Assembly (NCBI GenBank): GCA_030704615.1
Contig: CM060733.1
Location: 43,028,001 to 43,092,000 of the forward strand
DNA: 64,000 nt
From: Takakia lepidozioides
Lineage: Eukaryota; Plantae; Bryophyta
Direction of reading: 5' to 3'
In this document: positions 2,611-48,300 of the stretch, in pieces
How positions within the stretch are numbered: position 1 is the first letter of the stretch
How the letters are laid out: each line of letters starts with the position of its first letter
Program-made: the position numbers and the translations under genes
The notes under the pieces: model-generated
What the model was told of the DNA's origin: nothing
Databases searched by the model: none
What the model saw: the letters and a program-made list of their open reading frames with translations, nothing else

Positions 2611-5600
2611 CTATGCTACTGCACTGTAAGGTACTCCTACCCATGTAGGCCCCTTTGCAGGTATTTCCCAAGTGGGTCCAAGTCAGACCCCAAATGTGAT
2701 AGCCACTTTAGTGGGCGTGGCATGTATTAGCGTTGCGCGGCCCGCATGCAATAGTTAGCTTTATTTGGATGGCAACCTAGCTGTCCAGTCGTGTTTGGTG
2801 GATTTGAGTATTGACCCATGGTATCAATTCACTGGTATGGAAAACCGACCCCAGCTGGTACAAAGAGTTCCACTACCTAGTACCGACCATTGCATCCTAT
2901 ATATACATATATAACGGCCCCAAGGGCTACTATTGAGGCAAGAAGGTGGACACCTTTGTGACACCGATCGGTGGATTACTTGGTATGTGCCCATTACCAC
3001 TCGGCTTCAACTTGGTTGCCAAAAGGGCCCGGCCGCACCGGACTCATTTCTTCAGAGAGCCGCTGGCTAAGTTAGCGACCAGATTAAAAGTTAAACAAGG
3101 GTGTGAACTTACAGGCTTACACTCTATTGGTCTAAAAAATAGTAATTTCAGGGGTCCGGTAATTCCAGGGAGGGAAAACTTTGAACGTGCATTGTCGGCA
3201 GCCATGATGGGTATGCCCAACCATCCATACGATCATATATCATACCCAACGTTCCATACATCCATGTGTATGGCAAGACATGCGGTGTAAGACATGAGTG
3301 CGGGCCGCGGTTGGTCCGCGGTACGCAAAGTGACCGCGTGGCAGGTGCTTTGAAATGAGCAGAGACAGACACGGCGGCACGGACAGGCCAGTTGACGTGA
3401 CGAGGAAGAAAACGACGAGGACCGGCCCCCTCTCTCTTCGGACTTTGGTGCAGCCCTAATAATAGTGCGGCAATCCTCCCCATCATTTGCTGCTCTGCGT
3501 TTCTCGTCCGAGGAATGAAGCGAGCCATGGCATTGACCAGGCATCCACACTCGCTGCTGTGGTACGTATTGTGTAGGCAGGCAGGAAGGGAGCCGGAATC
3601 AGGGATGGGGACTCAGGAGTCGGGAGTCGAGCCTCGGACCCACAGACGCAGAAACGGACTGTAAGTTCCTCTGAATTCCGATTCTCCACTTTTTCCAGAG
3701 ATTCCTCTCGTCAGAGTTAGAATCATAGTCTTGCACAGTGCAATTGTACAAGAACAAGAGTTGGCTTAGCTGACAGCGCAGGAGCATGGCAAGGGAATGG
3801 AGGTGTAAAGTAAGTAGGGTAGATATTTTGAGCACAGCAACTTGCCCCACCTACTCTTGCAATCAAACATGATCCTACCGACGCCCAGACCAGCACACTC
3901 ATCATTCACACCACAACCATCGTTGTGGGTACGGCAAGGCCTTTGATTACACACTCACAGTTCCCAGGATGTAGTTCCATTCTTGCAAATGTAATGAGTG
4001 AAGAGCATTAGTGCTCAACTTCCACAGAGATGTGGGAGTCACTGTACAGTCTCAAGCAAGTGTGGGGAGGGAAGGTATGGAGGGCACAAGTTGTTGGTGG
4101 AGACGATGGTTGCATAAGTAAATGCCCACTGAGACATTTTTTTAGGGGGAAGGGGAGGAAGCCCTGTAAGTCATATTAATGAAGGATGTCCTGGAAAAAA
4201 TAACCAGGACAGGCCGCCTTAAGGCTTACATCTTTGTAAGCGTTTGTATGACTATATTGATTTATTTGTTTTATCTTTTCAAAGGACTGCCGTCAGGAAT
4301 TTTGGAGTGCTCAGGGGTACCCAAAATTCTGATGGTTTGGGGCCCTACAGCAAGGTTGACTTTACCACGTGGCAGGCAGATGGGGCTGGGTCCTGCATTT
4401 GCAGGCGACGGGTTTGTCGATGGGGTCCACAAAAACGGGCTCACACAAAACAGCCCCCGGGAGTTCATGGGTTTTGATGACGTGGCCCCTTTTTCTTTGC
4501 CGGAAGGCCTAAGTAGGAAATCCCTTTTTTTGCAATCTCTGCCTGTAAATAGCTTAGGATGGTTTCATTTTTTTTTCAGGGTAGTGAGTATGAAGGCGAG
4601 CAACAACATGACAAGAGGAATTTTGCTTCCCTCAAAAATTGGGGGTGATTTGGGGTGATTTGGGGTCATGTGATAGAAATGGCCATTTTTACCCCCTTAT
4701 TTTCCCATACAAAGCAACCATTGTGAATTTTTGGAATTTGGCTCTAGATTTTTGGGTGGACATGCTGAAGGTGCCATACAATTAGAATCTGGAGCCTGGA
4801 TAAAAAAATTCTAAATGGTAGGCCATGCCATAACCAATTTTTCACTATAAAAATGAAAATAGTAGAAAAATTTGGCCTAGCATTTTTGTTATAATCTTCC
4901 TAATTAGACCGTCAAATCTCCTAAGATTTTCAAAAGGGGGTGCATGAAATAGGTAGGATCACTTTGGTACAGTTGGGATGTGTGTCAAATGAGAGATATA
5001 TTCTCATCCATGAGGGTAGGTCTGGGTTTGGACATGGCCCACAAAAAACAGGCTCGTAGACCAATGAACTCAAATAACCATGAATGATTAATATTTTTAG
5101 ATGTAGTAGAGTAATATTTTAGATTTTGTGAATAAATCTTCAATAAAATAGTTACATTTCATATCAAGATTTAGAAATATTATAACGTATTTTTTAGTAA
5201 TTTTTTAGTAGTTGTTTTAAAGAAAAAGGAATCCTGGGAGTGACAGCTCACAACTCAGGCCCTTGAGGAGGGGGAAAAATAACCCCCTTTCATTTATGGG
5301 CCATGGAGGCACACAGGAAGATAGTAATTTGCTTTGTTATGCTATAATGTGTTATCATCTTCTAAATTCCACATTTAGGTCTTTATAGCTACTTCAAGTT
5401 TAACCTTAAAGGGATCGCCATTGGGCAAATGTCGCCCTCCAAAAATAAGTGACATAAGACGAGTTAACTCAAGCAACACATCCACATTGTTACATCCAAA
5501 AAAAATGAACCTTATCATATTCACCTTGGTTACCATGTACATCCTAGCAAATTGCGGAGAAATTCACCATACAAGAAGAGAGATTTTAGTGTTTTAGTGG

Positions 5601-7384: not shown

Positions 7385-7690
7385 TTTGTTAGCTTCTCAT
7401 GGGTACTGCAAAGAAGCACAAAGATTTGGGCATATATTTATCCAAGGATCTGAATCTAAGTCTGCAAGTCAAAAAAAAAAAAAAAAAGTCTGCAAGTCTT
7501 GTTTACATGCCTAACGACTCAGTTTTAGATGCCCTACTCAGTAATGACTCCCTATTATCATGGGAACAAAGGTTTCAGATTGCATTGGGGGCTGCAAGCG
7601 GTTTGGAATATTTGCTTAAACATTGCTCTTCCTACATTATCCACAGAGATATCAAACCCAGTAATATCCTGCTTGACAGGTACTATTGCA
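7385..7690 (+). pseudogene. Receptor-like kinase (RLK/Pelle) catalytic-domain fragment
   Basis: '[52 protein letters not shown]' matches subdomains V-VIb. No DFG or downstream subdomains, and it is interrupted by a poly(A) insertion. Confidence 0.85.
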
Positions 7691-9144
7691 CAATTGAAGC
7701 AACTCCATTCTCTTTTCTACAATTGTCTATATATACAGCTCTTCTAACATTCCGTAGAGTAACGACTACAACTCTAGACAACAGATTTGACAGGACTTTG
7801 CTGGTTGTCAGCCACCGATGTGACCTGTATGCATTGCATCCCACACTTAAGTTACTGATTGTGCATCAGGAAAGTGCTAATAGCATAGCAATCAAGATTG
7901 GAGCATTGTGCTCATAGCAATGATCAAATTGCAAGTACTGGAATAACGTGTTCATCCATCAATCCTCTTGAAGAAATCTATTTAGATTACTCCAATGTCC
8001 ATGGGCTCAACTCCTTCATCCACATCTTTGCCTTGATCTTGATGTTTCTCCACCGTCTCATCTGTCTCCTCCACATTGAGGACAATATAAGGGGAGAGAT
8101 GTCTTTCTAGTAATCGTCACCTCTTTGGACACCTTGAACCTTGTTGGTGACCCAGCAGCACAGCCACAACAAACCGAGGTGAGGCCGATAGTCCATGATG
8201 TTCTTTCCACCAATTAGCGGTTATTTTGATCTCCTGACATATTGTTGCTCTAAATGATCTTACCCACACCAACAACCTGAATGTCTTGTCCAGGTATCAT
8301 TGCAAGATTCATAAGTTTGAGGAATTGGTCCTTATTCTTAGACAATTCTTTTAGGACCGTGTCTGTCAAAACAGTTTGCCTTCTCTATTTTTTTTCTCGA
8401 TCAATGTATTTAGATCCCCACTTGCTGTCGTATTCTCAATATGCGGTATCAGATTTGTGTCACAAAAAAGTATCAAAGTCATCCTTTGGAACCCCATCTA
8501 CATACAAGAACGATCTATACAACTCCTCCTTGGCAAACTCGTCGACCTCTTCCTGAAAAAAAATGTTATACTGAGCTCACAAAAGTGTGACCATAACCTA
8601 GTCACATAAAAATATATTGAAACGATTTAACGATGTATGTATGCATAACAATTAGGTATAATCAACTCGCAATGAAAACAACTATTACATGTTAGAACCA
8701 AACTCACGTTTAACTCCGCCAGAGTATATGACTACATTAGCCTGCCTAGGCAAGCCCACCTTCTAAATGCCGTTATTTACAAAATTGATTCTCGACTTTT
8801 TCCTGGAACATGAAACAAAGGCATGCGGAGGCGTCATAGATTGACACAGGAAAATGCTTCTTGCCTTTCTCCTTTGGTAAGAAACTTTCTTTATAGCTCA
8901 TTGCTGATTCCTTATTACTTATAGCTTGCTCGAGAGTATTCACGATCAATACATGAACGTACGATCGTACAAACTAGTGATCACCAAAACATTGAAACAT
9001 TAAAAACATAAAGCCACAATTATTTTATTTCTATACAAACTATATGTACATAATTACAATATAGTTCAACATCACGTATCATTACATTTGAAACCAAGTT
9101 CATTGTGTGCGACTAAGTCGTTAGCATGACCTACATTGTAAATA

Positions 9145-26638: not shown

Positions 26639-29600
26639 ATGCCAGGAATTCTAAGCAGCTACCAGATGGGTAAGCAGACCCAACGAAGTCCTCCCGAGTC
26701 CTTCAAGCCGCATAGCAGTGATGGATCAAAGGACACCCAAGCAGAATCAAAGGGGGGGCTTACCGTCGATAAAGTGGAGATCATCTCACACGGGTCGTTG
26801 ACAAAATCATCTGGAAGCCCAGAGCTGTCCAATATCAGTCCGAAAAGTTCCAACTACGTTAGCTCCGGACTTTCAACGAAGTTCAATGTGAGCTCCCCAC
26901 GCAGTGTTTCTTGTATAGTAGCGACTCAGATGAGTCCCAAGTTGGCTCGAAGGCGACATGACAGCGTTGGACCAAGGGTCAGCAACGGTGAGAGGCTTTC
27001 AGACAACAATAACTCTGATGATGCAGAGTACAAGAATGGTCCTATCACCAGCGACGAGCTGCGACAAATTGAACAAGTTCTCCAGTCCTCTGGGTCCCGC
27101 CTGGAGGAGCTCTACAAGAAGGTATGTGCGAGTCTGTGGCAAGTCTCTAATAGTTGATTGGCCTCTGTTGACCCACTGGTAGTGCTTGGTGCTGCCTTAC
27201 AATTTGGTTACTTGGATTGAATTCCGAGGATAGCCATTACTGTATATATGCAATAATTGTTTCTCTCCTTTAATACTTCTCTCCACAATACTTCCTGAAC
27301 TGTCATTAGCCCACAGCTATCCTTATCTGTTCCCCCCTTCTTTCACCCACTTGTTCCATTCATACCGAGTAGAATGTTTACTACACTACTCAACTCCGTA
27401 CCCTAAAACCTAATTCTAATGTCTGATGTCTATTTAATTACTCATGAGCATTGTGGTGGTGAAATATATGGTAGTAGATGTTATTATGTCATTGGCCCCC
27501 CGAAATGTCAGTCCAGTGCCAGCCATCATGACATTAAATGCCCCATCCCCTTGAGGCACGCCTCTCTGTTGTTTAATGAGAAATTGTAAGTGAAAGAAGT
27601 CTGTAATGATAATATCTCTAGGTAGTAATCTAGCACTTTCATATGAAAAAACCAGCCTCACCTGATGCAATACTAAACACATGCCTTGCCCAATCAAGCT
27701 TTAATACATGAATGCTGTCCTGATGCTAAGAACTCCTTCATATTCTATGTACAAAATAAAATGTTATTCAAAATCTGGGGACCTGCCAAGGCATCCTCTC
27801 TGCCCCTATCTCCCTCCCTCCCGTCAGCATGCAGGACTTATAATGAAAGTGAACTGGGTCTTTTTGCCGTCAGTTCTGTATTCAGCCTTAGTTAGATCAT
27901 ATATCATGAGCAATGGGGGACTGTCATGTCCATTTTGAAATCTTGCTGGTGCTTATGGACCTTCCATCCTTCACATGGTACATACTATGCAGAATTTTTT
28001 TCAATTGGTGTCGAAGCTTGGATGTGGCTTTAATGATGAGCCTTGTTGGTGCTACTGACCCTTCAGGTGTCACAATCTGCCTTTAAGGACCATGGCTCAA
28101 TATTCGAGATTTTGGAATGGGACATATTGAAAGAGACAGGTTACATGAGCTGGCTTGGTTTGGCTTTCACATTAGCAGGCTACCTCAGCTCCCACAGCCA
28201 TGAGGAGGTGAATACTCTTACAGGAGATAAATGGGCCACTTTAAGCGGTCAGACAGATCGTATCATCGACCAACTTGATGAACTGAAGCTGTGTCTTGAG
28301 GCTGACAATGACATCTACAAGCTGGCAGCTGGTACTCTTCTATATTGCTGCTCAGTGGTTCGACATTTGGAGCAAAAATCTCATAAGTGAGTGCATCAAT
28401 TGCTTCTTGAAACAACTTTCAATATCACTGTATGCTCTAGACAGTAGGATTCATGTCCTGCCGTATGTTTTGATTCCCGCGGTAGCAGACAGCTCTAAAC
28501 CCAACCATGAATTGCAGTAAAGTCGGCACATGAGTTCAAGTGTGGACAGTGTCATTCCTGAGATCTAATAGAACGAAGCAGACCTTGGTAAACGTTTATT
28601 TTTATGTCTTCCCACTATTTAGTTGTTGGTGTATGGTAACGGGAGTAAATTCCTAAGCAAATATTTGAACAAGCCGTGGCAGCATCTACAACCTAGAAAG
28701 CATGTCTCAGCTTTGGACTGAATCTATTCAATACTTGTCAAAAATTGTCAAATACGCAAAATTTGCTTGTGCTATAAGAGTGTCATTTCTTTTCCCAGTA
28801 TTCGTCTTACTGTATTTTGGCACAGCTTTGTCTGGAACCTCATTGGAAAATTGATGAAAGGGGGCTGAACTTGGCAGGTGCTCATGCTTTAACTCATGGT
28901 CATCACAGGGTCCTTTAAAGCAGCAGATTGACAATTCCATTGCTGAGCTCAAGATTTTACAGGATAATCTCACATTTGCAACACTGGCTGCTGTCGGGAA
29001 CCGTGTTTCTCAACCAGTCACTTCTCTAGGAGCAGCTAGCAAAAGGTCTGGACAGGAGCTATGGTCTGGGAGCGTGGGACTGGACCAGCACATTACTCAG
29101 ATTATGGACTTCATCAAGAAGAACGGTGTGTGTCTTGTTGGCATCCATGGGCAAGCCGGTTTAGGGAAAACAACACTTATCAATGAAGTTGTTGCAAAGG
29201 TTGAGAACATTGAGAAGCGTCTTTTTGCATACATCGAGGTGAGTGAAGATGTTCGGAGGCTTCAGTCATCTCTGCTAGAACAACTTGGGGGTGGCAAGAT
29301 GGAGTTCACCAGTACTGCTCAGGGTCGGAGTGCATTGCTTTATCAGCTGCAAAAGCTGAAACAGAACAACAAGGTGGCCCAGATTGCAATCAGCAATTTG
29401 TTTGATGTCCGCTTAGTTGGAGAGCTCTTCCCCCACAGCCTGGGCAAAGTCCTCCCAGCAAATAGTTGTGTCATTATTACATGTCCTTCTGTAGCGATTC
29501 TCAGCAAAGTTGACCAGCTTTGTCGCTCTGCCATGCCTGGGTACCACTATTTGCCATACAAACTGCCTTGCCTGGCTCCACAACAAGCTAAAGCTCTCTT

Positions 29601-32600
29601 CATTGCTCATGCTGCCTCAGAGCCTGTGAACACCGTAGTGTCTATCAAGGGCATATTCTCCAAGTATGGGGACTTGGCTGATTACTTTCTGCCACTTTGT
29701 GAAGGTCTGCCTGTGGCCTTGAAGGTTGTGGGTTCTTACTTTTCCAATCCTGCCAACCGCAATGAGGAGAATTGGCTGGCTATAGGCAAGCGAATGAAGC
29801 AGGTTTCTGACGAGATGGATTCCTCTGAAGATCAGATGTTTGCCAAGCTGCTGGTACGTTTTGAGAGCAAATTCTACTTCAAAGTTCAAAATACCAGTGA
29901 CTGGATGGCTAATGAACTGACTGGGAAATCTTATTAGCGAAGAAATCTCTCAGGAGTCCACACATCTGGTTTCAATTCTTCAAGCGATCGTGTAATGGAA
30001 CTTCTTTTTAATGCAAACTAACTGGACTCTCACATTGCAAGTCTACAGAAGGCATGACGTATGAGCAGTTTCCAGTTGGAAGGCATTTCAGGAAACACTT
30101 GTCTTCAAGCCTGTGTCTTGGAGGCCCACAGGAAGCTTGATCTTTCTTAACAAGGGGATTAGACCATTACCGATACATGATGCCTACTGGGTATCTCAGT
30201 TCTCAATACATGTACGATAGCACATGAATTGACAGTCTTCGTTTGAGAGTTATATGAGGTTAGCGAGTTACATGATGGTAGCAGGACCAGGATGAACTGG
30301 TGGGTTGGACCTAGTTACATGTTATGCACCTGACGTCAAGCCTTGATCTGATGAATCAACAGCCCGCTTCAGAAGCATGTAACTTGTTTAGATCTCTACA
30401 GAGCAGGAGAAAAATCAGTATTTCCAGTAACTTCTCTTTTTACATGGATGCAGGTCATTTATGAGAAGCTAGGCCCAGCTCAAAAGGAGGCCTTTTTAGA
30501 TATAGCCGCATTTTTTCGGGGCTGGGACTGGAGAATAGTGGAGCGCATTGTCAGGAAGCCTCAGTTGGACACTTTGGTTGACCAGGCTCTTGTCAATGCC
30601 AAGCTGAAAGATGCAGAGAGCATCTCTGGCATTGCTCGGTACACACGATACTCTGAGCAGCCTTGGAAGACAGAGATGGTCATCATGCATGAATTGCTGT
30701 ATGCCATCGCCTGCAGGCGTGCCCAAGGAAACCGCGTGCAGTCTGAGGATCAGACCCACTTGCCAGATCGACTCTTGATGGATGGCCCTGGCATGGTTAG
30801 TCTCGAGTATTCAATTCACACTGATAATGTCATTGTGATATACTGATAGCAGTAGTTCATTAACCAAGTTAGGAGTTAGCTTCAATGACATGAGTTTTCT
30901 CACGCGATGGAGCTCTTCTACTTCGTGTGTGACAATATTTGCAAGTTGTAGTAGCTCAGCATCTGCTTTGGCATCTGATCTACTTTCCAAGCATGCTTGC
31001 AGTGCTCCGTTCTGTGTACTGCCTCTTGCTCAGTGTATTGGTGGCCTTTTCTTATCTTCCATCTTCTCTCGTTTCCTATGTGGAGTTTCGAGTGACAAGG
31101 AGAGTGTGTGAGACAGGAGGTTACCAGGATCAGCGTAGATGATTTGAATTTTGGGGCTGTGCGCAGGAACTAAGTAACATCCAGGGGCTGTCCATCATAA
31201 GCTGCAAAGAACCGTTGCAAGGCACAATGCTCGAAAAGATGCAGGGTCTGCGAGTGCTGATCCTCCATGACACAGGCGTGCGTGGCTACTGCACAAAGCC
31301 GTTGAGCCAGCTCCAGTTCCTTTACTGGGGCCGAAGCCAGGTTTCCCAGGAGGTGCGAATCCCATTTCAGATGGGAAGACTGCGGAAGCTCGAAATGCTA
31401 ATCCTGCGTGCCAATGAGATTGACCTCACTATCAAGGTATGCCCATGTTATCAACATGGTCACTAAAAATTCTGTAACGTCTATCTCAATATCTGTTTTT
31501 CTGGGGGTATGATGTGGTTACACCTGTGTGTGTCAAGGACCATGTCGGTTTTGAGTTAGTTTATGAGTGCATGGTCAAGACCCGAATGCTATTCCAAACA
31601 CTTCCAGAGAAACAGATATGTCAAGTTAGGTCATTTGATTCATGTCAGCACTGAGATTCTGATTTTAGTTATTCTGAAATTCAAATATTTGGCTGGATGC
31701 AGTTTCCTCAACAGCTCAAAGACCTAACCATGATAGGTTGCAACAACCTGGACGAGCTGCAAGATTCTGTACTGCAGCTGACAGGCTTGCTGGAGCTCCA
31801 TCTCATTGGTTGGAACAGGTTGCAAGATCTGACGCAATCTTTCGCCAACTTGAAGATGCTGCGCCGCTTTCGATTGGAGAACTGCCTTAGTATCCGACAG
31901 GTTCCAGAATCAATCGGACAGCTTGCAAGCCTCCGTGAATTGGACTTCTCAGGTTGCACGAACATCACCACCCTTCCCTCAGAGGTTGGCAGCCTTCAAG
32001 CAATGCACAAGCTCAACCTCACAGGATGCAAATGCCTGGTGCAGATACCCAGAGAAATTGGAACCCTGAGAAGCATGACACACCTCTACCTGGGGCAGAC
32101 AGGAGTCACCACCCTTCCGGCAGAGATTGGACAGCTCCGTGCGCTGGAGGAGCTATCAGTGGCAGGCTGTGTCCGGCTAGAGAAATTGCCCAAAGAAATC
32201 GGGCTCCTTGCTTCTCTATTGAGGCTCAATCTGAGCTCATGCACAGGCCTCAAAGAGCTGCCCCGTGAAATTGGCAAGCTGGGCTCATTGCAAAAGCTTT
32301 CTCTGAACTCGTGCTCTTCCTTGTCCCGGCTGCCAGATGAAATTTTTGAGCTGGTGACTCTTCAGGCCTTGGATCTTGACTACCTCAAATTGTTGGCGCA
32401 CCTGCCTGCAGAGATTGGACATCTGCGCTCACTGCAGCGGCTCTCCCTCAATTGCTGCACCAGGTTGAACCGGCTGCCACCTGAAATTGGAAGCCTGCCA
32501 TGTTTGCAGGTGCTCAACCTTGTTGGTTGCACAGGCCTCAAGCCTGAATTGCCACTGGAGATCGAAAAGCTGAGCAAGGAGCACTACGTGTACGTACACA

Positions 32601-32671
32601 GGGAGGATGATGCTGTCATTCTGGAGGGTCCCAAGAACCCAAGCTTCAAGCTCTACAGCATGACCTACTGA
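26639..32671 (+). CDS. Atypical NLR: disordered leader + helical (MLKL/Cbl-N-like) domain - NB-ARC - LRR
   Basis: Exons 26639(or 26666)-27121, 28067-28386, 28878-29853, 30454-30795, 31167-31436 and 31703-32671 join in frame with GT-AG sites. Motifs: P-loop GQAGLGKTT, GLPL-like CEGLPVAL, RNBS-D FLDIAAFF, MHE, and many 24-aa LxxLxLxxCxxLxxLPxEIG repeats. Confidence 0.93.
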
Positions 32672-45392: not shown

Positions 45393-48300
45393 ATGGCGTT
45401 GCCAAAGCATATGCGGCAGGAGAAGCGGATACCATCTTTTTACCTCATGGTGGCTGGTGCTGTTTGTGTTGCCTTCTTTTTTATCGCTATCTGGGTGTAC
45501 AGTGCTCCCTCGGAGGTGCCAGAGCAGACTGGAAGCTCCAATGCAAATGACAAGAACTCAGGCGAGTCCACAGATTCCAAAGCTCAGGTGTTCGAAGATA
45601 CTCCTGGTGACTTTTCAGAGAGTACTGAAGACAGAGTGACAGATGATTCTTCAAAATCAACAGATTCTCAGCAAAATAGGGATGAAGGGAGTGGAGAGAG
45701 TGAGGAGAAGGCACGCCTCGAGCAAGTACAGAAGCAGGACAAGCAGATTGAGCAAGGACTAGAGTCTGAGAGTACAAAACAAGATTTAGCTGAGCAAGAC
45801 AAGCAGATTGAGCAGGGACTAGAGTCTGAGAGTACGAAAGAAGATTCAGTCGAGAAAGATTCTGCTGCTGACACAGAGCAGGGCTCCAAGACAGGCCAGA
45901 AAACTGATGAGGAAATTCCTGTGGGAGTCCAGCAGTCAGAGTTATCAACAGAAAACAAGGATGTGGGAGCTGGATGGGACACCCAGTCTAAGGAGTCAAA
46001 GGAGGAGTCTCAAATCAATCAGGAAGTTTCGCAAGGTGAGTCCAATCCTTCAACCGAACCTTTGACTGACAACACTCCAAAGGAGGCAGATCAGGCAGCG
46101 CAATCAGAGGGGGATAAGGCAGGGCCTTCACAGGAAGATGAAAAAATTGAGCAAGCGCAAGAGGCTTCAAAGACCCCTATTGTACAAGAGGTAGTTGACA
46201 GTGAAGCAAGCACAGATGCGGCTGAAAAGTACAACTGGAGGATTTGCTCATGGGGAGGTGCTCAGGATTACATTCCATGCCTGGACAATAAGAAATTTCT
46301 GGACCACTATAGACCCCGTAAGCACTATGAGCACAGGGAGCGGCATTGTCCCTCTGAGGAGGATCTACCAAAATGCTTGGTTCCTCTTCCTAAAGGATAC
46401 AAGGCATCAATCAGGTGGCCTCAGAGCAGAAATGAAGTGAGCTCTTCTTCTTCACCTCTATCCTGAAGGGTCAGTAGTGGGCTCTGATAAGTACTGGGAT
46501 TGATAATACTCTGATAATCAGAGAAGAGGCATGGGGCTTTATTGAATGAGAGTCTCGAGTCTTTGGAAAACACTGACTTGTTGAATCTCTCCGATGATCT
46601 GTGTACACACACTGAGTCTATTTTGCAATAGTTGGGAAGGCAGTACATTAATGCCTTAATTGGTCACATGGTTGGGTGCAGGTGTGGTATGCTAATGTGC
46701 CTCATCCAGGTCTGGTGTCGTACAAGAAAGATCAAAACTGGGTGAAGAAAACTGGGGAGAAGCTTGTATTCCCTGGCGGTGGGACTCAATTCAAGAATGG
46801 AGCGGGCCATTATATTGATTTTGTGGAGAAGGTGAGACCTCTTAGCACTGTGGCATTGTTTACTTTCCGTTTTGTGTTTTTTTTAAATCTTATCTGAGAC
46901 AGACTATATTAACCCAAGTTCCATTTGTCGCCGCCATGGCTGATTTACTCTGGTATTTGTGCTGTTTTCTGGCCTTTCTGTCTTTGTGACACTCTCATGC
47001 GATGATTTAAAGAATCAGCAGCAACATGTAGGGACTTTTGCTGAAAGGTGATTTCATTTATTAACAGGCACTTCTCTTTCTCCTACCAGATTGTGCCAGA
47101 TATAGCCTGGGGAAAGCACACACGTGTATTACTGGATGTTGGCTGTGGAGTGGCCAGCTTTGGAGGTTATTTGTTTGAGAAGGACGTCCTGGCAATGTCA
47201 TTTGCACCCAAGGACGAGCATGAAGCCCAAGTGCAGTTGGCATTGGAGAGAGGCATCCCTGCTTTCTCATCAGTCATGGGCACACAGCGCCTGGTGTTCC
47301 CCAGCAATGTGTTTGATGTGGTGCATTGTGCCCGCTGCCGTGTGCCTTGGCATGTGGATGGTATCACTCCTTCCCAGAAGCTTTTCTGTACTTTCAGCCT
47401 TGAAATCCAGCAACATTCTTAAAAAACTGTACCCACTCAGAAAATGGTGAAAGGCATCATTTATGTAACATGTCCTTTAGAGAACTTCCTGCCTTCATGA
47501 ACTTATCATATGTTGTTTGAAATCTTTGCTAGTTTCAGACTTTGGGTTCATGTATGAAGCTCATCTTCATGGCAGTCCAATTGACACCTAACCTGTGTGC
47601 TGCTTCGATTTTCTTCAGATTGCTCACATGTTTTCCAGAGAGAGAGCTGTCTCCGTTAGGCTTAGTATACCCTTGGGTTGATTTTCTATGAAGAGGGAGA
47701 GAGATAGACTGTCAGACACCATACATGTGGTTGTGTAAGTGCCATGTGCCTGTGTAAATTTCTGGGCTGCCTCTTTCAATATTGACATTTTGTTGAATTT
47801 ATGTTGTTGATAGGTGGCATGCTGCTTCTAGAGCTGAACCGGGTACTACGGCCAGGAGGCTATTTTGTGTGGTCAGCTACACCTGTGTATCAAGACAACG
47901 AGGAGGACCAACAAATATGGAAAGGTTATATGTTTGACACCCTTTCGTAGATGAGGTGTAGTCAGTGAACCGCCGGTATTTATGAAGAGTTGCGGGACTT
48001 CTGCAGTAAGTAAATAGACTAGTTGGCTTCTTTATCTTCTTTTCCGACCCTGGATTCCTCCATAGTGGCAAATTGTATGTGACATTCTGGAGCCAATTCT
48101 TGCTGCTGGTACATTACTTGATGAAGTCTTCTTCTATAGTTTTCCATTGGCTCGTTGGATATCATATTAACTAGAAGCCCATTAGTGGCCAGTGTATTGC
48201 TCTTCACCAAAGAGAAACAAGAAATAGATGCTAAGCCCTCATCTTTGTATCAGTTTTGCTTATCCAGAGAAAGAGAGAGAAAGAAAGAAGCTTTATACCA

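Follow-up and report, generated by a model that had tools for sequence, protein, structure and literature searches.

The NLR gene and its nucleotide-binding domain

[quoted passage not shown] The locus is an intact, spliced, and transcribed NLR gene on the + strand, with six exons and about 1119 codons that encode a leader, a helical bundle, an NB-ARC domain, and an array of leucine-rich repeats (LRRs). An initial annotation of positions 28878-30795, which correspond to exons 3 and 4, had described an NLR with an intact P-loop and inactivated-looking hydrolysis and sensor motifs, and had proposed a pseudo-ATPase that may act as a scaffold or regulator. The features of the gene, all on the + strand, are as follows.

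26639..27121, +: exon 1, which opens with the start codon and encodes a Ser/Pro-rich leader of 161 codons (open reading frame, ORF; donor at 27122 confirmed by a contig spliced from 27121 to 28067)
28067..28386, +: exon 2, helical N-terminal domain (spliced contigs over introns 1 and 2)
28878..29853, +: exon 3, linker helix, nucleotide-binding domain, and ARC1 of NB-ARC (Pfam, AlphaFold2, Foldseek)
29149..29175, +: P-loop GQAGLGKTT, canonical (GxxxxGK[T/S]); G-K-T kept in all relatives read
29371..29406, +: Walker B, K-V-A-Q-I-A-I-S-N-L-F-D (K165-D176), on model strand 168-172
29464..29487, +: RNBS-B, S-C-V-I-I-T-C-P, without Arg, on model strand 197-202 (Roq1 alignment via the spliced relative P0013)
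29704..29715, +: GLPL motif, reading G-L-P-V, aligned to the GLPL of ADR1, NRG1, and Roq1
30454..30795, +: exon 4, ARC2 or winged-helix domain, with RNBS-D (F-L-D-I-A-A-F-F) like that of TIR-type NLRs (TNLs) (weak match to Pfam WHD_ROQ1)
30607..30675, +: 23-residue stretch K52-E74 of exon 4, before the MHD position, gapless in 15 aligned moss copies
30685..30693, +: MHE in place of MHD, read from the sequence and common only to the subclade of the window gene
31167..31436, +: exon 5, start of the LRR region (donor confirmed by a spliced contig in both runs)
31703..32671, +: exon 6, LRR array and stop codon (Pfam LRR_14, 1.2e-35; RNA contigs identical to the window)

All introns have GT..AG splice sites and no stop codon occurs within the six exons, so the frame and splice sites are as intact as first described. 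Exon 2 ends in phase 2, and its split codon is completed at 28878. The contigs that represent the gene come from two public runs (two studies), lie on exons only, and show zero differences from the window (on exon 4, for example, over 30464-30651). Their joints leave out intron 1 (27122-28066), intron 2 (28387-28877), and intron 5 (31437-31702) and fall precisely on the predicted splice sites. The RNA label of both runs is a guess, and it is the spliced joints that show a processed transcript. The contigs bridge neither the exon 3/4 nor the exon 4/5 junction; both are confirmed by spliced relatives (from Physcomitrium patens, Sphagnum, and Marchantia paleacea) that are collinear with the window gene and whose corresponding segments meet precisely where its exons end and begin.

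One of the runs, X1, also contains a contig at 29300-29368 with a word depth of about 100, where the other contigs of the gene have about 3-7. Over some 69 bases it matches the window at 90-95% (the differences are at 29313, 29326, and 29335); it is closer in DNA than any relative fetched (85% at most), and runs into unrelated sequence past 29368. It may stem from a paralogue closer than those fetched, from a piece of the gene within some other transcript, or from alternative splicing at the GT at 29369.

The leader in exon 1 is weakly conserved, with only its last 40 or so residues aligning in the nearest relatives, and exon 1 had no match at all in the liverwort proteins compared. Exon 2 is 47-69% identical to its relatives, and no Pfam family matched it. 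Searches used single exons and natural spliced relatives (P0013 and others) as queries, and exon 3 matches the Pfam NB-ARC family (PF00931) at 2.1e-12 with 47.3 bits against a cut-off of 23.5, while P0013 covers profile positions 2-223 of 248. For exon 3, an AlphaFold2 model made from an alignment of 13 sequences has a mean predicted local distance difference test score (pLDDT) of 70.8, with 83-91 over residues 130-210 and 80-91 in the core. Its best Foldseek matches are ZAR1, WRR4A, and Roq1 (E-values of 2e-11 to 1e-10) and the NRCs, followed by Apaf-1 and ORC/Cdc6; the match probability is 1.00 to ZAR1, Roq1, NRC, and Apaf-1, placing the nucleotide-binding domain and ARC1 in the fold of the STAND (signal transduction ATPases with numerous domains) and AAA+ proteins.

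Walker B and RNBS-B are among the most invariant motifs of plant NLRs, and the Walker B consensus is KRFbbbbDDbW (PMC9519389). Residues K165-F175 of the window protein fit this consensus without gaps, but where a canonical Walker B reads hhhhDD the window has I-A-I-S-N, with Q168 at 29380-29382, S172 (AGC) at 29392-29394, and N173 at 29395-29397. Likewise, the canonical RNBS-B hhhTTR, with its Arg, is replaced by I-I-T-C-P. The strands of the exon 3 model (85-90 before the P-loop, 117-120, 168-172, 197-202, and 223-228) place S172 at the C-terminal end of the third strand, at the Walker B Asp position, and P203 directly after the fourth, at the RNBS-B Arg position. The alignment of P0013 to Roq1 puts D-N under D-D and T-C-P under T-T-R. 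Because the model strands and the P0013/Roq1 alignment agree, the motif register is confirmed as real, and an alignment artefact is ruled out. This bears out the initial readings of a canonical P-loop, a Walker B with S-N for D-D, and an RNBS-B without Arg, and no canonical acidic Walker B lies elsewhere. A phmmer alignment to NRG1, which sets L-F-D-V under L-D-D-V with a four-residue gap, was rejected on the model strands, the Roq1 alignment, and the gapless consensus fit.

Pfam WHD_ROQ1 matches exon 4 weakly, over residues 10-49 only. The GLPL motif (as G-L-P-V) and the MHD histidine are present and the MHD aspartate has become a glutamate; the exon 4 model is poor here and no solved structure aligns. 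The profile of exon 4 gave zero matches at E <= 1 to solved structures, leaving the MHD region unaligned, and an AlphaFold2 model of exon 4 alone was discarded (mean pLDDT 53.7, and less than 50 over the 23-residue stretch). The stretch before MHE, which had been noticed as an insertion, presumably makes the domain, by a rough estimate, about 15-20 residues longer than canonical winged-helix domains. Several of its positions are invariant in the 15-sequence moss alignment, in which exon 4 is gapless, and it is also present in named moss and liverwort proteins.

The bryophyte family and the distribution of the substitutions

A word search with exon 3 returned 12 protein clusters at 62-81% identity, all exon-sized ORFs on metagenome or Logan contigs, and the contigs of these relatives together with a JGI metagenome scan gave 45 loci. 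Exon sizes are steady among them: exon 4 has 114 codons (342 bases) in all 41 loci that cover it, exon 5 has 90 codons (270 bases) and exon 6 about 322 codons (966 bases) in the loci covering each, and exon 3 has 975 bases in the nearest subclade and slightly more in the others. With P0013 as the query, full-length proteins were found in named mosses (Sphagnum fallax P0014, Sphagnum troendelagicum P0021, and Physcomitrium patens P0018) and named liverworts (Marchantia paleacea P0022, Apopellia endiviifolia P0023, and Calypogeia fissa P0024). These are collinear with exons 2-6 of the window gene and are 57-64% identical to it in exon 3 and 55-70% in the LRR region. In exon 3 the identity rises to 82% among unnamed relatives, which come from metagenomes and other assemblies, and exon 5 is 68-86% identical to its relatives.

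The window gene thus shares the collinear six-exon layout and the high NB-ARC and LRR identity of the family, and in the tree it groups with an 11-row clade with 100/99 support. The most divergent member is P0025, a protein of 471 amino acids from a Logan assembly that is 48% identical in exon 3. A profile word search found nothing scoring between the family and the 1e-8 limit, and solved NLRs score only about 20-40 bits against it; the family is therefore a well-separated, long-lived clade. On the evidence of these comparisons, it is an ancient NLR family common to mosses and liverworts.

The JGI metagenome Ga0116227 alone has at least five distinct members (L016, L026, L032, L038, and L042) from four deep subclades, and the named Sphagnum proteins fall in two of these four; Sphagnum seems, from the sequences, to carry several old paralogues. 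P. patens and Marchantia paleacea returned one protein each.

The family allows the unusual residues of the window protein to be sorted by age. The second Walker B position is Asn in every relative read, liverworts and P0025 included. All 27 other distinct exon 3 proteins (from the 45 loci) and the named moss and liverwort proteins read R-I-A-[IV]-D-N, and the extended motif in every relative is R-I-A-[IV]-D-N-[LIV]-x-[DE]. At RNBS-B, the mosses show T-C-[PS] and the liverworts T-S-P or S-S-P, and T-S-R is confined to P0025. Since P0025 combines this Arg with a D-N Walker B (and has the stretch before MHD), the Arg was lost after D-N had been established. The stretch before the MHD position is likewise found in every relative read. 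In contrast, MHE is restricted to the subclade of the window gene (12 rows, 100/99 support), and every other member has MHD.

A few changes belong to the window copy alone. Of 125 columns that are invariant in the 27 other exon 3 proteins, the window deviates at five (L101I, L125V, R168Q, D172S, and T315S), and the only non-conservative ones, R168Q and D172S, both lie inside the five-residue Walker B strand. They turn the family-diagnostic R-I-A-[IV]-D-N into Q-I-A-I-S-N, with two of six residues changed, and D172S required two nucleotide changes (GAC or GAT to AGC). As judged from the alignments, there are then three layers: a family-wide, ancient one (the Asn, the loss of the Arg, and the extra stretch), a subclade one (MHE), and a private one (D172S and R168Q). 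A comparison with orthologues had been proposed to see whether the substitutions are conserved, and the answer is divided, with the Asn shared by all relatives but D172S and R168Q private.

At D172, N173, D176, T201, and C202, synonymous codons have turned over among the relatives while the residues stayed unchanged, and therefore the non-canonical residues themselves are constrained. Because they are present across the relatives with such synonymous turnover, most of the inactivation-looking features are, on the alignment evidence, conserved character states under purifying selection and not decay of the window copy. The proposal of an inactivated pseudo-ATPase is accordingly kept in part: weak or absent hydrolysis is plausible for the whole family and more strongly so for the window copy, but inactivation specific to this copy is not what most of the deviations, being family- or subclade-wide, point to.

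The rest of the gene has been under selection as well. The ratio of nonsynonymous to synonymous substitution rates (dN/dS), calculated by the Nei-Gojobori method between the window and those relatives that allowed an estimate of the synonymous distance (dS), is 0.10-0.15 for the exons combined, 0.04-0.17 for exons 3 and 4, and 0.11-0.14 for the LRR exon; an unsaturated pair of relatives, L001 and L004, gives 0.07. Tajima relative-rate tests with two outgroups found no excess of amino acid change on the window lineage, which was slower in several comparisons. Across the 1118 in-frame codons counted, a random substitution has about a 4% chance of making a stop, and the intact frame allows at most roughly 0.01-0.02 neutral substitutions per site, the probability of finding no stop being about 0.07 after 0.02. 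Broken relatives do occur in moss-associated metagenomes: L042, which matches over 3001-3975, has a stop downstream in exon 4, and L044 and L045 are partial copies with stops that cover 3001-3678. Decay is therefore detectable in this family when it happens. With an open frame, spliced transcripts, a dN/dS near 0.1, and no rate excess, the window copy does not look like a decaying pseudogene, though it could have lost its function very recently. A gene whose orthologues all had normal motifs and which was itself unexpressed with a dN/dS near 1 would have spoken against the pseudo-ATPase idea; that combination was not fully found, as the relatives are not normal at the second Walker B position and the gene is expressed with a dN/dS near 0.1.

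How the nucleotide switch may work

Plant NLRs are usually described as ADP/ATP switches that are reset by hydrolysis. In NRC1, the P-loop Lys/Thr, the GLPL motif, and the MHD histidine contact ADP, the Walker B acids are assigned to hydrolysis, and a D-to-N change at the second Walker B position is one made experimentally to probe hydrolysis (PMC6713354). In I-2, as reported in PMC12405136, replacing the second Walker B Asp lowers hydrolysis and auto-activates the receptor. In ZAR1, the RNBS-B arginine R297 is salt-bridged to the MHD aspartate D489 (PMC9519389).

The nucleotide switch of the bryophyte family appears to be built unlike this canonical NB-ARC, with hhhh-D-N at Walker B, the RNBS-B arginine gone, and an extra stretch before MH[D/E]. 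As the P-loop, GLPL, and MHD histidine are kept, nucleotide binding is probably retained, and with the residues normally assigned to hydrolysis replaced, the family probably runs on the binding and exchange of nucleotide, with hydrolysis resetting the switch little or not at all. The conserved winged-helix stretch beside MH[D/E] would be a candidate for keeping the receptor off. In the MHE subclade, the change from Asp to Glu may matter less because its RNBS-B Arg partner is already gone. The window copy seems to have gone one step further by losing the Mg-coordinating Asp (D172S) and a neighboring family-invariant Arg (R168Q), apparently with purifying selection still acting on the remainder of the protein, and without the Mg-binding Asp it should hydrolyse still more weakly than the family. 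The reading we favor, and hold to be probable, is that of a functional gene of an ancient bryophyte family whose product binds nucleotide with weak hydrolysis or none. Across mosses and liverworts the protein is strongly conserved throughout, its LRR region too, a pattern more in keeping with a conserved NLR of the signalling or helper kind than with a fast-evolving sensor.

Several points weigh against this reading. Retained binding, weak or absent hydrolysis, and a signalling role are inferred from sequence, whereas gene structure, expression, motif register, the spread of each substitution, and selective constraint are observed. The nearest relative found is 82% identical, so that D172S may be old or recent and may or may not be fixed. 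Synonymous sites have reached saturation between the window and its closest relatives (the proportion of synonymous differences, pS, is 0.61-0.78), and the dN/dS values are a long-term average over both lineages, not a value for the window branch. The RNA contigs leave codon 172 (29392-29394) uncovered, so that the Ser is seen in the genome assembly only. Finally, D176, R178, H186, and K190, which follow Walker B, and R216 are invariant across the family and could supply substitute catalytic or sensing residues.

This last point is the basis of the main rival, in which the family, and perhaps the window copy too, is a working ATPase that uses those other residues (D176 at +4 among them) and is non-canonical but not inactive. 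Conservation in the domain is highest over the 20 residues that follow Walker B, where many charged residues are invariant, and D-N and T-C-P have been retained under strong constraint since mosses and liverworts diverged, which is easier to reconcile with an active site than with a dead one. However, the D-to-N change at the second position is the standard one for probing hydrolysis (PMC6713354), the reach of the candidate residues to the gamma-phosphate is conjectural, and the window copy additionally lacks the Mg-binding Asp. We regard a working ATPase as unlikely.

Another explanation is recent disablement of the window copy, as a gene or as an allele, by D172S, which would have abolished its function and left it transcribed but no longer selected. 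The invariance of D172 and R168 in every other member, together with the placement of both private non-conservative changes in one five-residue strand, is what a recent loss might look like, and broken relatives such as L042, L044, and L045 are known. Yet the frame has stayed open over 1118 codons despite the low chance of escaping a stop after just 0.02 neutral substitutions per site, splicing is correct, and amino acid change on the window lineage is not in excess. The two nucleotide changes behind D172S also suggest time under continued selection, unless they arose as a single dinucleotide event. Recent disablement is thus doubtful, and a little more so than a working ATPase. It is very improbable that codon 172 is an assembly or sequencing error and that the real gene has the family Asp: the RNA contigs do not reach the codon, but the error would have to involve two neighboring bases (GAC to AGC), another private change occurs four codons upstream, and every contig representing the gene matched the assembly wherever they overlapped.

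A bolder proposal can also be made. Mosses and liverworts split more than 400 million years ago. A conserved, helper-like NLR lineage common to them might have given up ATP hydrolysis more than 400 million years ago and have worked since as a binding-only or one-shot switch, with the extended winged-helix wing as the restraint; we offer this as a speculation with perhaps a slim chance of being right. If it were true, the window copy, with a Ser at the Mg position, would be a natural test of the minimal ATPase site, and the Ser could even put Mg/ATP binding under phosphorylation control. The family offers a natural system for asking whether NLR regulation needs hydrolysis at all. It occurs in the tractable models Physcomitrium and Marchantia, and the window copy adds a second natural variant, one without the Mg-binding Asp.

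The window neighborhood and comparison with known NLRs

No second NLR was found in the 64 kb by tblastn or among the large ORFs, although a very divergent or heavily spliced one could escape such a search. An ORF at 45393-46466 (+) matches Pfam Methyltransf_29, a putative S-adenosylmethionine (SAM)-dependent methyltransferase (9.5e-19), and one at 7399-7917 (+) is a protein kinase fragment (2.5e-8). Between 56001 and 62000, the G+C fraction climbs to 0.52-0.59, GC and AT skew are both strongly positive, and several long ORFs on both strands are without a Pfam match.

With canonical NB-ARC NLRs such as ZAR1, Roq1, and the NRCs, the window protein shares the fold, the domain order, the P-loop, GLPL, the MHD histidine, and the LRR array. 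It differs from them in having S-N (D-N in the family) and not D-D at Walker B, T-C-P and not T-T-R at RNBS-B, and an extra stretch before MHD, and hidden Markov model (HMM) alignments between the window protein and solved NLRs break between the P-loop and GLPL. The named bryophyte relatives, all uncharacterised proteins, are like the window protein in the Asn of the D-N type, the absent RNBS-B Arg, and the same stretch before MHD; all six are unlike it in keeping R168 and D172 and in reading MHD, as MHE is confined to unnamed relatives in the subclade of the window gene.

The RPW8-type NLRs (RNLs) ADR1 and NRG1 are among the best Protein Data Bank sequence matches for the ARC1-ARC2 part, and NRG1 has T-S-R at RNBS-B, the form also found in P0025. 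Both the RNLs and the bryophyte family are conserved rather than fast-evolving, and the LRR region of the latter is under purifying selection. The likeness is one of sequence match and not of a tree, however, and there are clear differences: NRG1 aligns with a D-D Walker B where the family has D-N, and RPW8 had no Pfam match at E <= 1 in the reading frames of exon 1 or exon 2.

Among bryophyte NLRs, Chia et al. (PMC11218826) catalogue types by their N-terminal domain, and motifs of the D-N type are not discussed there. Their CC(Cbl-N), or MAEPL, NLRs are likewise a type from non-flowering plants with a helical-bundle N-terminal domain. The MAEPL motif is generally at the very N-terminus (PMC11218826), whereas the window gene has a 161-residue Ser/Pro-rich leader before its bundle, and Pfam did not find a Cbl-N domain in the window protein. 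A limited search of the literature found no description of the motifs of the bryophyte family, which is weak evidence of novelty. The novelty lies in the combined state (D-N, an absent RNBS-B Arg, and an extended wing), in how old and how widespread it is among bryophytes, and in the private D172S; the kind itself is known.

Angiosperm NLRs with a canonical P-loop but Walker B and MHD motifs that are non-canonical have been described, and one example is NARY, a modulator that acts with NRCX (PMC12405136). As presented there, NARY resembles the bryophyte family in that the degeneration is lineage-wide and not confined to one broken copy. It differs in its motifs, which read L-I-V-L-E-D-V and L-V-G, in its head-to-head arrangement with a partner NLR, and in its youth, being from the Solanaceae. 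By comparison, a second NB-ARC gene was undetected in the 64-kb window, and the non-canonical state of the bryophyte family dates to the ancestor of mosses and liverworts.

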